From NCBI RefSeq assembly GCF_963676685.1, contig NC_092351.1, positions 39,556,001-39,620,000 of the forward strand: a stretch of 64,000 nucleotides of DNA, in the 5' to 3' direction. A program made the position numbers and the translations under genes. Each line of letters opens with the position of its first letter. The first letter of the stretch is position 1. The notes beneath the pieces were generated by a model that ran no database searches, was not told the DNA's origin, and saw only the letters and a list, made by a program, of their open reading frames with translations. The DNA is from Mytilus edulis. Its lineage: Eukaryota. Positions 52,041 to 62,945 of the stretch are shown here, piece after piece.

Positions 52041-52141
52041 TCATCCGATCTCGTCATGATCTCGTTCTTGTACTCCGAAGTTTGGTATATTGAAGTGGTC
52101 TACTAGACTGGTAATCCTTGGATAATCTCCTGCACCACTAC
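52041..52141 (-). CDS. Gasdermin-like gene A, last exon (short acidic tail GSGAGDYPRITSLVDHFNIPNFGVQERDHDEIG*)
   Basis: Acceptor tttgcttcag|, phase 1 matching the donor at 53308; TGA at 52043-52041. Confidence 0.7.
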
Positions 52142-53307
52142 CTGAAGCAAATGAAACCACAATGATGTTAACGTAGATGAAAGTTTTGGTATGGAATGTC
52201 AGTTCCAGCGTACTAGATTACAAATCTGCTTTACACACTGTTTACACTTTATTATTGTTTGTTTTTTTATGAATATAAGACAAGAAGATGCATTATGATT
52301 GCTAATGAGACAACTCTCCACCAGACAACAAATGATGTAGAAGGTTAGCAACTGTGGGTAACAGTATGGCCTTAAACGATGAACAAAACTCATACCGCAT
52401 AACAAGCTATACAAGACGCCAAAATGACAAATGTAAACAATTCAAACGAGACATTTTTTGGTCCACCTTTACATCTCATATTTTTCAAGTATGACGGTTC
52501 TTTTCCGGTTTCAGTTCGGACGTAGTCTAAGAGATTAATTTATAATGGAAAATGTCAATCTTACACGTTTCGATCTTGAATTATAAACCAAAACAAATAA
52601 ACTGCATATGATCATTTATTGCATTAGGTTTATGAAGCATGGGTGAATAAAACTGACTATAGATTTTTTCATACGTATAAATCTGTTCCCCGAATACTTT
52701 GATGTTCTAAACATGTACTTGTTTTACAGATGTGATGAATGTTTAACTTGAACCTTCTTAACACAGATGATATATGAAATAAACTGATTTAGAAAGTAAA
52801 GAAGTAAACTATCGTTTTTTTTGCAGATTTATATCTACAACTTCAAAAACTAACAAATATAACGGGAAGATTGATCAGCTGTTCTAGAAAAAGAAATAGT
52901 CTAACTAGTACATGTATTAGTTTACCAGTATTTCTAGGCAAATCACTTAAGCTTGTCCTTAGAAATTCATTTACCAGTTATTGATAAAAAAAAACACGTT
53001 TACTCTCTCCCAAGTAAGCTTTCACAAAGAAACTGGTAATTAAATGTTCAGTGATACCAAATTTACCAGTAGATTCTATTAGTGTAAAGTAACTTGAAAA
53101 ATATGTAGTATGCTAGCCAATGAAACAACTATCTCACATAGTGCAAAGGAACAATAGGTGAACGTACGACCTTCAACAATGAAGAAAATCCATACTGTAT
53201 TGTCACCTTTAAAAGGGTCCGACAAGATATGATAGAGATTTTGACTTGGTGTGTCTGACACGTTCAATACCATACAAATTCTTACTAATCATCTAAAATA
53301 AGCTTAC

Positions 53308-53601
53308 CATATTTTTCACAATTTGCAATCCCCTGTCTGAAGTAATACCAAAACCTTGATCTTTGGACCCACGACACACTCATTTTTGTAAAAGATTTTT
53401 TGGACACTCGTTTTATACATCTGGCTTCAAAGTCGTTCCATCCTATTCTGACTCTTTTCACTGTGAAGCCGACTGGGAACCTGCTTGTCTCAGATCGACA
53501 TGATTTGACCTCGCCGTCGAATAATATCTTTAGGTCAAATCTATCTACATAGTACACTTTGTCTACTACATAGACATATACGTCGTCGAAAATGGAATCT
53601 T
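53308..53601 (-). CDS. Gasdermin-like gene A, exon 3
   Basis: tttttacag| ... G|gtaagc, 294 nt; VYVYVVDKVYYVDRFDLKI...RFPVGFTVKRVRI resembles the gasdermin lyVVtev and P..(A/G)F strands. Confidence 0.8.
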
Positions 53602-54029
53602 CTGTAAAAAAAACAAACAAGATAGTTTAACAGATTGGACAGTTTTGCTAATTTACATGCGCCATGTATAAATGCGTTACAACCCGTACTCTGGGATCTC
53701 AAAACCATGCAAAACTGAGCTAAGTTGCTTTGGTGATCAGATAAAGTTCAAATTTAGACATGAGAGACATCTGTATGAGGGTAGCCAAATATTAACTCAT
53801 ATGTCAAAAACAAACTGACAATGTCGTTGGGAAAAACAAAAAAAACGACGAAAAGATAAACAACAGTTCACAAAACACAATATAGAAAACTAAAGATAGT
53901 GCAACACAACCCAAACAAAACCCAGGTGTGATCTAAGGTCCACAGTAAAGATAAGCAGATTCCTCTTAACATGCGACCACATGTTTTATATTCGATTCTC
54001 AAAATGTCTTGTTAAAATGCAAGAGAATC

Positions 54030-57000
54030 AAACAACGGATCATTACACTAGATTATTAAGCAACGGCTCTCAACACTAAACAACCAAGCAACGGATCACT
54101 ACACTAAACATTAAAGCAACGGATTACTACACTAAACAACCAAGCAACGGATCACTACACTAAACATTAAAGCAACGGATCACTACACTAAACAATCAAG
54201 CAACGGCTCACTACACGTAACAATCAAGCAACGGGTCACTACACTAAACAATCAAACAACGGCTCACTACACTAAACAATTAAGCAACGGGTCGCTACAC
54301 TAAACAATCAAACAACAACTCTCTACATTAAACAATCAAGCAACGGGTAACTACACTAAACAATCAAGCAACGGGTCGCTACACTAAATATTAAAGCAAC
54401 GGATCACTACACTAAACAATCAAACAACGGATCACTACACTAAACATTAAAGCAACGGGTCACTACACTAAACATTAAAGCAACGGATCACTACACTAAA
54501 CAACCAAACAACGTCTCACTTCACTAAACAAGTAAGCAACGGCTCACTACACTAAACATTAAAGCAACGGATCACTACACTAAACAATTAAGCAACGGAT
54601 CTCTACACTTAACAATCAAACAACGGCTCACTACACTAAAAAATCAAGCAACGGCTCACTACACAAAACAATCATGCAACGGCTCTCTACACTAAACAAT
54701 CAAGCAACGGCTCTCTACACTAAACAATCAAGCAACGGCTCACTACAATAAACATTAAAGCAACGGATCACTACAATAAACAATTAAGCAACGGCTCACT
54801 ACACTAAACATTCAAGCAACGGCTCACTACACTAAACATTAAAGCAACGGGTCACTACACTAAACAATCAAAGCAACGGCTCTCTACACTAAACAATCAA
54901 ACAACGGCTCACTACACTAAACAATCAAGCAACGGCTCACTACACTAAACAATCAAACAACAACTCTCTACATTAAACAATCAAGCAACGGGTAACTACA
55001 CTAAACAATCAAGCAACGGGTCGCTACACTAAATATTAAAGCAACGGATCACTACACTAAACAATCAAACAACGGATCACTACACTAAACATTAAAGCAA
55101 CGGGTCACTACACTAAACATTAAAGCAACGGATCACTACACTAAACAACCAAACAACGTCTCACTTCACTAAACAAGTAAGCAACGGCTCACTACACTAA
55201 ACATTAAAGCAACGGATCACTACACTAAACAATTAAGCAACGGATCTCTACACTTAACAATCAAACAACGGCTCACTACACTAAAAAATCAAGCAACGGC
55301 TCACTACACAAAACAATCATGCAACGGCTCTCTACACTAAACAATCAAGCAACGGCTCTCTACACTAAACAATCAAGCAACGGCTCACTACAATAAACAT
55401 TAAAGCAACGGATCACTACAATAAACAATTAAGCAACGGCTCACTACACTAAACATTCAAGCAACGGCTCACTACACTAAACATTAAAGCAACGGGTCAC
55501 TACACTAAACAATCAAAGCAACGGCTCTCTACACTAAACAATCAAACAACGGCTCACTACACTAAAAAACCAAGCAACGGCTCACTACACTAAACAATTA
55601 AGCAACGGCTCACTACACTAAACAATCAAGCAACGGCTCACTACACTAAACAATCAAGCAACGGCTCACTACACTAAATAATCAAGCAACGGCTCACTAC
55701 ACTAAACAATCAAGCAACGGCTCACTACACTAAACAATTAAGCAACGGCTCACTACATTAAACAATCAAGCAACGGCTCACTACACTAAACAATTAAGCA
55801 ACGACTCACTACACTAAACAATCAAGCAACGGCTCACTACACTAAACAATCAAGCAACGGCTCACTACACTAAATAATTAAGCAACGGGTTATTACACTA
55901 AACAATTATGCAACGTCTCACTACACTAAACCATTAAGCAACGGCTCACTACACTCAACAATCAAGCAACGGCTCTCTACACAAAACAATCAAGCAACGG
56001 CTCACTACATTAAACAATTAAGCAACGGGTCACTACACTTAATAATCAAGCAACGGCTCACTACACTAAACAAGCAAGCAACTGCTCACTACACTAAATA
56101 ATTAAGCAACGGGTTACTACACTAAACAATTAAGCAACGGGTCACTACACTATACATCGAAGAAACGGCTCACTACAATAAACAACCAAACAACGGGTCA
56201 CTACACTAAATAATCAAGCAACGGCTCACTACACTGAACATTAAAGCAACGGGTCACTAAACTAAACATTAAAGCAACGGATCACTACACTAAACATCCA
56301 AATAACGGGTCACTACGATAAACAATTAAGCAACGGCTCACCACACTAAACAATCAAACAACGGCTCACTACACTAAATAATCAAGCAAAGGCTCACTTC
56401 ACAAAACAATCATGCAACGGCTCTCTACACTAAACAATATAACAACGGCTCTCTACACTTAACAATTAAGCAACGGATCACTACACTAAATTAAACATTA
56501 AAGCAACGGATCACTACACTTAACATTTAAGCAAACGGGTCACTACACTAAACATTAAAGCTACGGATCGCTACACTAAACAACCAAACTACGGCTCACT
56601 ACACTAAACAATTAAGCAACGGCTCACTACACTAAACATTAAAGCAACGGATCACTACACTAAACAATCAAAGCAACGGCTCTCTACACTAAACAATCAA
56701 ACAACGGCTCACTACACTAAACAATAAAGCAACGGGTCACTACACTAAACAATCAAAGCAACGGCTTTCTACACTAAACAATCAAACAACGGCTCACTAC
56801 ACTAAAAAACCAAGCAACGGCTCACTACACTAAACAATTAAGCAACGGCTCACTACATTAAACAATCAAGCAACGGCTCACTACACTAAACAATCAAGCA
56901 TCGGCTCACTACACTAAACAATCAAGCAACGGCTCACTACACTAAACATGAAAGCAACGGCTCACTACACTAAACAATCAAGCAACGGCTCACTACACTA

Positions 57001-61740: not shown

Positions 61741-62364
61741 GTTAGTAAACTAAGGCTGGCAAGGATTCTATTACGGTAAATTAGGGATTTCAAGAACACG
61801 ATAGTTTTAAAATATCGCCACAGGCGTGTGGAGCCTGCACCCTATTTTATTTTTGGGGGACGGGAGGGTTGGTCAATTCTTTTTAAATGTATTTATGTGT
61901 TTTCCCCAATAAATTAAAGTTTTTCCCACGGACGTGTGTTGTTTTACAAATGTTCTGTTAAGAGCAATAACACATTCAATACAATTACTTATAAATATAT
62001 CAAGATTTTTTAAAGATTTTTTCTTTCTTTTGCAGAAAAAGATCAGAGATAAATACACATGTTATATTTCACTGAACTTTCAGATTCTTGTGACCATAGT
62101 AAGGTTCACGCAGTGTATTTTTCTAAAATACATAGCAAAAACTACATAATTTCATTTTACATCTGCATCCATTATTTGATCAACTAAAACGTAACTTAAG
62201 CTTAATATCTGATTTGGGAGTTTTGGAACAAAATATTTGTTAAAAAACTATTTCTTGATTTATTTTTTCTCTAAGGGAAGGGAGGGGCCCGAGGTGAATA
62301 AAGATTATGGAATACTTGTCCCAACAGTACTAGTTCACATCTTAGGTTCTTGTACTACAAAAAT

Positions 62365-62670
62365 CAAGTATTGTTGATATTCAAGTATTGTGGTTATTCA
62401 GGTATTGTTTGTTATTCAGCTATTATTTGTTATTCAAGTATTGTTGAGTGTTCAATCATTGTTTGCTATTCAAGTTATTGAAGAAATGTTTGTTATTCAA
62501 GTATGATTCAAATTTGTTTAGTATTCAAGTATTGTTTAATATTCAAGTATTGTTTGGTATTCAAGTATTGTTGATATTCAAGTATGTCTGATATTCAAGT
62601 ATTGTTTGTTATTCCAGTATTGCTTGTTATTCCAGTATTATTTGTTATTCACGTATTGTTTGTTATATTC
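62365..62670 (+). repeat. ~16-18-bp minisatellite (tattcaagtattgtttgt) abutting the exon 3 acceptor
   Basis: About 17 degenerate copies. Confidence 0.85.
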
Positions 62671-62676
62671 TTTTAG

Positions 62677-62945
62677 GATTTCAGTATGTAAACAAGATTT
62701 ATCTGGTATACGAGGTTTGCTATGCAGACAAGATAGCAGTGACCGTCGGGATAGGGAATGAAACCGACAGAGTAGAAATAGATCAACGAGTTCCTATTGG
62801 CTTCAAAATGCGAAAATACAAGCTTAAAGAAAATGGCGCACTCGGGAAGCCTACAGACCAACCAAATAAATCGAAGTTCGAATGGATAAAACGAGCGCAC
62901 TTCCGGAATCCAATGGATGATTTACCTGATATACCTGATGAGTGA
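62677..62945 (+). CDS. Gasdermin-like gene B, exon 3
   Basis: ttcttttag|; FQYVNKIYLVYEVCYADKIAVTVGIG...RVPIGFKMRKYKL...PMDDLPDIPDE*; AATAAA at 63146. Total CDS 714 nt (237 aa). Confidence 0.82.

Follow-up and report, generated by a model that had tools for sequence, protein, structure and literature searches.

What might two short genes whose products are predicted to adopt a gasdermin-like fold be doing head to head in a mussel genome? The question is raised by genes A and B, which lie on opposite strands between positions 52041 and 62945 of a 64,000-nucleotide stretch of Mytilus edulis DNA (RefSeq assembly GCF_963676685.1, contig NC_092351.1, positions 39,556,001 to 39,620,000 of the forward strand), hereafter called the window. 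An earlier note on this DNA proposed that the two proteins are pore-domain gasdermins that form a two-component pore or an effector/inhibitor pair. The present analysis indicates that A and B very probably belong to C11orf42/DUF4663, a family of its own that had already been described and is predicted to have the gasdermin fold. The wider reading, in which they form a co-regulated, non-lytic pair of this family, is favoured on balance, and its non-lytic component, taken alone, is put forward tentatively.

Structure and transcription of the two genes

Seven exons splice into two open reading frames (ORFs), one of 852 nucleotides encoding 283 amino acids plus stop codon (A) and one of 714 nucleotides encoding 237 amino acids plus stop codon (B). 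The exons and the region between the genes are as follows.

59439..59532, minus strand: exon 1 of gene A, coding part from the conserved Met (MTWKTYK...); translation, GT donor and junction in transcript contigs
57392..57754, minus strand: exon 2 of gene A; contigs cover 57392-57753 and join to 59438
53308..53601, minus strand: exon 3 of gene A; a loose contig end at 57392 (run X2) enters its first codons
52041..52141, minus strand: exon 4 of gene A and stop codon; the spliced product matches the end of database protein P0001, and the KYG-SGAGD motif spans the junction
59784..59874, plus strand: exon 1 of gene B from the ATG; junction in transcript contigs, DUF4663 profile positions 9-36
61387..61740, plus strand: exon 2 of gene B; transcript contigs, 97% identity to M. 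trossulus P0018
62677..62945, plus strand: exon 3 of gene B and stop codon; DUF4663 E 1.8e-6 for the exon alone, transcript contigs
59533..59682, minus strand: possible in-frame N-terminal extension of A, otherwise 5' untranslated region (UTR); ORF 59431..59682, where database models start
59655..59733, unstranded: gap between the outermost contig ends of A (59654) and B (59734); candidate bidirectional promoter core of about 80 bp

All introns are of the GT..AG type, all junctions are in phase 1 (after the first codon base), and the 3' UTR of B extends to at least 63052. Exon A2 is present in 20 public M. edulis runs, 14 of which were guessed to be RNA as they hold only 29-98 million contig letters against a genome of 1.37 Gb. 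Contigs from four probable RNA runs, belonging to four studies, were compared with positions 57200-63100. The A1-A2 junction (57753/59438) is present in all four runs, and the B1-B2 (59873/61386) and B2-B3 (61738/62675) junctions are each present in three of the four, while the loose contig end at 57392 continues into the first codons of exon A3. The A3-A4 junction lies beyond the compared stretch. Only the spliced form of A3-A4 yields KYG-SGAGD, which is uninterrupted in the scallop A-type proteins, whereas read-through gives unrelated residues, and the C-terminal end of P0001 is identical to that of the A model. Therefore, the A3-A4 splice is indirectly supported. A and B are transcribed, and A is properly spliced, in agreement with the two spliced, opposite-strand genes described in the earlier note. 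A spurious chain of ORFs is ruled out by the junctions in RNA contigs together with the conserved proteins. The transcript contigs show 13 differences in the coding exons, ten synonymous and three nonsynonymous, and both genes occur together in four ordinary runs at similar relative depth, rising and falling jointly.

The introns are free of contig cover except where repeats draw contigs from elsewhere. The intronic stretches 58380-59170, 60150-60940 and 61140-61336 attract hundreds of divergent contigs (90-95% alike) with very high summed depth, and are probably dispersed repeats that are transcribed elsewhere in the genome, outside both genes. Most of the intron between A3 and A2 is taken up by a tandem array at 54026-57344 with a 28-bp unit, about 118 copies and 86% matches, and an 18-bp tandem repeat of 17 copies at 62364-62666 stops 10 bp short of the acceptor of exon B3.

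RefSeq/ENA already contains annotations of both genes. A is an 'uncharacterized protein [Mytilus edulis]' (XP_071126173.1/CAG2203176.1; P0001, 317 aa, with 34 extra N-terminal residues), and B is identical to an 'uncharacterized protein C11orf42-like [Mytilus edulis]' (XP_071126175.1/CAG2203177.1; P0037, 237 aa). P0001 and P0037 were found with single-exon queries, shown to be identical to the spliced models and used for full-length searches and folding. Because of these annotations, the earlier remark that the pair could easily be missed is only half correct. The single exons appear as separate ORFs in the mechanical ORF list.

Two in-frame ATGs lie upstream of the conserved Met of A, at 59634 (+34 aa) and 59682 (+50 aa), and the database models start from them (P0001, 317 aa; P0043/P0044, 333 aa). 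Since a transcript contig of A reaches 59654, at least the ATG at 59634 can lie in the mRNA. Four Mytilus species conserve the open extension, which in M. californianus carries an in-frame indel. AlphaFold2 (AF2) gives the extension a pLDDT of 25-42, and it is predicted to be disordered except for a short helix rich in Arg (residues 3-11 of P0001). Scallop A-type proteins carry only six extra N-terminal residues, and the profile alignment of A with B begins at the Met chosen in the earlier note. The open upstream frame and the reach of the contig mean that the reported distance of 251 bp is that between the conserved Met codons and not necessarily that between the true starts.

Six AACGT(T/C) motifs lie in the interval 59533-59783, where 0.15 would be expected (P about 2e-8); nowhere else in the window is ACGT so densely clustered. 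Four of the six are located inside the gap of about 80 bp between the two transcripts, and the 12-mer AACGTTGGTAAA occurs twice in the interval (59554, 59735). The AACGT motifs are candidate sites for a shared regulator of A and B. Since A and B are divergently transcribed from one short shared promoter region, they are probably co-regulated.

Family membership and predicted fold

B matches the Pfam family DUF4663 (PF15668) with 72.1 bits (E 5.8e-20), residues 3-206 aligning with profile positions 9-242 of 367, against a gathering cut-off of 25 bits, and its single exons match the profile collinearly. Relatives from oysters, a scallop, the annelid Owenia and further assemblies score 37-104 bits. 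The full-length A-type proteins P0001 and P0020 have no Pfam match, DUF4663 included, and the scallop A-type proteins P0013 and P0026 reach 25.8 and 25.0 bits on DUF4663 with the N-terminus only. Alignment of the A-type with the B-type profile by hhalign gives a probability of 99.0% (E 2.4e-18, 229 columns, 17% identity), and therefore A is a diverged relative lying outside the current DUF4663 model. The third exons of A and B are also similar by BLASTP (E 1e-6, 21% identity), and the second exons gave no significant BLASTP match. The two genes are thus divergent paralogs with equivalent introns, as proposed earlier, and their relation is distant. A profile of the aligned third exons retrieved 17 proteins from 1.84 billion representatives, and in the whole 1.37 Gb genome the family profile matches only the six larger exons of A and B. 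The C11orf42/DUF4663 family has no M. edulis members other than A and B.

Each type carries its own conserved C-terminal motif. That of the B-type proteins, RNPMDxLPxxP, follows the folded domain (B residues 224-237, 62904-62945), and that of the A-type proteins is KYG(S/G)(G/A)AGD. RNPMDxLPxxP occurs twice in the relative P0014, as is typical of a short linear binding motif.

A maximum-likelihood tree unites the A-type proteins, which come from mussels and scallops, in a single clade (support 100/100) with long branches (stem 1.81, mussel stem 1.5). B-type sequences from mussels, oysters and a scallop fall together with annelid and further ones. A evolves faster than the B-type proteins, and 70 columns are invariant among nine A-type sequences. 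Since the A clade is common to mussels and scallops, the duplication predates the split between them. The family search turned up only B-type proteins for oysters and Owenia, where these apparently work without an A partner. Accession and LOC numbers of A and B are consecutive in M. edulis, M. trossulus and M. galloprovincialis, and both genes are on the same contig in M. californianus, which suggests adjacency in all four Mytilus species. The scallop Ylistrum balloti has A and B together on one contig of 2.12 Mb, and their LOC numbers differ by six.

AF2 models were built from a 24-sequence family alignment. The B model has a mean pLDDT of 88.2 and a pTM of 0.85; in the A model (P0001 numbering), the core 34-278 is mostly at pLDDT 70-93 and the last 39 residues are disordered. 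Foldseek against the Protein Data Bank (PDB) at E<=1e-3 returns gasdermins only, in 21 of 21 matches for B and 16 of 16 for A, and the best match of both is the Trichoplax gasdermin pore 8jyw_A (9.5e-8 for B, 6.7e-6 for A). Structural alignment with VIA-align gives the following values.

8jyw_A (Trichoplax pore): B Z 14.3, rmsd 2.9 A over 191 residues; A Z 12.6, rmsd 3.3 A over 195 residues
8jyv (Trichoplax crystal): B Z 13.9; A Z 12.5
GSDME (9h5m): B Z 13.2; A Z 12.0
RCD-1 pore (8jyz): B Z 8.2; A Z 7.5
cholesterol-dependent cytolysins: B 6.8 or less; A 6.0 or less

Over 25 gasdermin entries, Z ranges from 14.3 to 7.6 for B, with the cytolysins as the next class, and the gasdermin entries give A values of 12.6 to 6.4 except for RCD-1-1 (8jyx) at 5.3. 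These rankings make the gasdermin fold of A and B well supported as a prediction. Sequence comparison gives a different picture: up to E 10, no A or B exon and no full-length protein matches Pfam Gasdermin (PF04598), so that membership of that family is rejected, and the family profile against PDB sequences finds no gasdermin, only chance-level matches. The ESM Atlas gave no usable match for exon B3 and the A core. Hence the earlier assignment to the gasdermin pore-forming domain holds for the predicted N-terminal fold but not for the sequence family, and the accompanying statement that A and B carry no large C-terminal repressor domain is correct.

No papers were found under the names DUF4663 or PF15668. 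The human protein C11orf42 was proposed by Bayly-Jones and Whisstock to have a gasdermin fold on the basis of mined AlphaFold models (PMC8986115, 2022); its sequence identity to gasdermins is about 1%, and it 'lacks membrane penetrating regions entirely' and was suggested to have a scaffold role (PMC8986115).

The hairpin regions of A and B deserve comparison with those of pore-forming gasdermins. Over the structural span aligned by VIA, B has 201 residues against 248 in the Trichoplax gasdermin and A has 212 against 247, and the span is 22-47 residues below that of solved pores. The distance from the YxV strand motif to the PxGF motif is 31-33 residues in A and B, whereas the corresponding stretch in the canonical gasdermin of the same genome, read from its exons, is at least 61 residues. 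This canonical gene (G000:C14:23619189-23630721) was recognised by three collinear weak PF04598 exon matches; its exon 1 has the usual basic/aromatic beta1-beta2 loop (KRRKRRWIFF), which A and B lack. The predicted hairpin strands of A and B are 20-45% charged and close in tight turns, GN in B and DG in A. For a canonical beta-barrel, the hairpin regions seem to be too short and to carry too much charge. The short hairpins agree with the published reading of C11orf42 (PMC8986115) but are no proof against membrane breach.

Explanations for the pair

These observations lead to a plausible picture of the locus. The family comprises bilaterian single-domain proteins with a predicted gasdermin N-terminal fold and no large C-terminal repressor; B is a typical member, and A belongs to a fast-evolving sister subfamily of mussels and scallops. 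The two genes would have arisen by an old inverted duplication, would be transcribed divergently from a short shared promoter region and would both be kept by purifying selection. They may retain the gasdermin 'palm' with shortened, charged hairpins, as does human C11orf42 when read from its predicted structure. Since the palm appears to be kept and the hairpins appear short and charged, the likeliest activity would be to oligomerise or to associate with membranes, possibly as an A/B hetero-oligomer, and to do so without forming a classical lytic beta-barrel. Any contact between A and B is inferred, and a complex prediction with A 35-280 and B 1-232 counts neither way, as its score of 0.00 comes with uncertainty in the partner's own fold and gives no verdict.

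Several points weigh against this picture of a co-regulated, non-lytic pair. The fold itself was predicted from an alignment of 24 sequences and not read from a solved structure, and the motif equivalence used for measuring the hairpin regions was inferred from order and fold, not from a residue-level structural alignment. Moreover, B (237 aa) is little shorter than the pore-forming 250-aa Trichoplax gasdermin, and pores with shorter hairpins are possible. On the side of co-regulation, contig ends are not mapped transcription start sites, and contig depth is a poor measure of expression. Outside M. edulis, neighbour status is read from accession numbers and shared contigs, not from gene orientation or spacing.

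There is also the possibility, judged rather unlikely, that the pairing has no functional meaning, being the leftover of an inverted tandem duplication whose paralogs act alone while A drifts to a new or reduced role. The long branches of A (stem 1.81, mussel stem 1.5), its loss of detectable similarity to the Pfam model and the presence of B-type proteins without a detected A-type protein in oysters and Owenia would all fit such a history. However, the A-type has been retained in mussels and scallops with its 70 invariant columns among nine sequences, and A is transcribed and properly spliced with mostly synonymous variants. Adjacency in four Mytilus species, as suggested by accession numbers, and the unusual motif cluster placed exactly between the two transcripts also speak against it.

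The two-component pore of the earlier note, in which either only the heteromer assembles or one partner inhibits the other until a signal in mollusc immunity, is improbable. It draws on the predicted gasdermin fold of both proteins, the lack of a repressor domain, and the best structural match of both to a domain-only Trichoplax gasdermin that is inactive as a dimer (PMC12547243); the RCD-1 pore also matches (Z 8.2 for B and 7.5 for A). The shared promoter region, the occurrence in the same runs, the linkage seemingly kept from mussels to scallops and the different conserved C-terminal motifs of the two types are likewise what such a pair could show. Yet the hairpin regions fall about 30 residues short of those in the genome's canonical gasdermin and are rich in charge, C11orf42 has been published as lacking a membrane-penetrating region (PMC8986115), and oysters and the annelid yielded B-type proteins only. 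A constitutively lethal pair is further opposed by the fact that RCD-1 partners are never found in one healthy cell (PMC12547243), while A and B turn up together in ordinary transcriptomes.

It is slightly less probable still that A and B form an obligate hetero-oligomer, a metazoan, genome-encoded two-subunit gasdermin-fold assembly that would be co-transcribed from one bidirectional promoter and act on membranes in bivalve defence or development; if true, it would be the first mechanism for the orphan C11orf42 family. A regulated hetero-oligomer, for instance with mutual masking by analogy with the Trichoplax homodimer, would have a low probability. A recent duplication is ruled out, as both types occur in mussels and scallops.

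Already known were the C11orf42 family and the gasdermin-like fold predicted for it, and both genes had been annotated. What is new is the recognition of A as a diverged member of the family common to mussels and scallops, the distinct conserved C-terminal motifs NPMDxLPxxP (B-type) and KYGxxAGD (A-type), and evidence of a promoter region common to A and B with a motif cluster. No function is known for the C11orf42/DUF4663 family, which is conserved in animals and predicted to have a gasdermin fold. Bivalves provide a natural experiment: they hold a typical copy alongside a strongly diverged one, with a promoter region shared by both. If A and B interact, or if either binds or perforates membranes, this would give the first functional handle on the family and show what a short-hairpin palm does. 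If not, the locus is an annotated paralog pair, and the gasdermin label applies to the fold only.

Elsewhere in the window, a 283-aa ORF at 21520-22368 on the minus strand matches Pfam HEPN_DZIP3 (PF18738; E 1.9e-6, 28.2 bits), and an ORF at 34309-34713 on the minus strand has a weak PAN-domain match (E 0.002) below the cut-off.

Comparison with known systems

The closest known relative is C11orf42/DUF4663 (human Q8N5U0). B reaches 72 bits on the family model and bears the RefSeq name C11orf42-like, and it shares with C11orf42 the same predicted gasdermin-like fold with short hairpins. In contrast to the mostly vertebrate DUF4663 model, the mussel proteins end near position 243 of 367 and lack the C-terminal third. 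Mussels and scallops also differ in having the second, diverged paralog A, which the model misses in mussels and meets only marginally in scallops (25.0-25.8 bits), and the two mussel genes lie head to head.

Canonical animal gasdermins (GSDME-like, PF04598) have the same predicted fold and the same motif order. However, A and B have no PF04598 match and no C-terminal repressor, and their hairpin region is about 30 residues shorter than that of the canonical M. edulis gene described above.

RCD-1-1 and RCD-1-2 of Neurospora crassa are domain-only proteins of gasdermin fold that act as a pair, and they are a weaker structural match (Z 5.3-8.2). They are incompatible alleles of one locus carried by different strains and kill on cell fusion (PMC12547243). 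A and B, by contrast, are encoded as paralogs in a single genome, share only about 17% identity and are both transcribed in the same healthy samples.

The Trichoplax gasdermin TrichoGSDM (8jyv, 8jyw) is the top structural match, with Z 14.3/13.9 for B and 12.6/12.5 for A. This 250-residue protein consists of a single domain and lacks a repressor domain (PMC12547243). Identity to A and B in the structural alignments is only 8-15%, with no detectable sequence similarity, and in the same structural range TrichoGSDM is longer by 35-47 residues. TrichoGSDM forms a disulfide-locked homodimer and a 44-mer pore.

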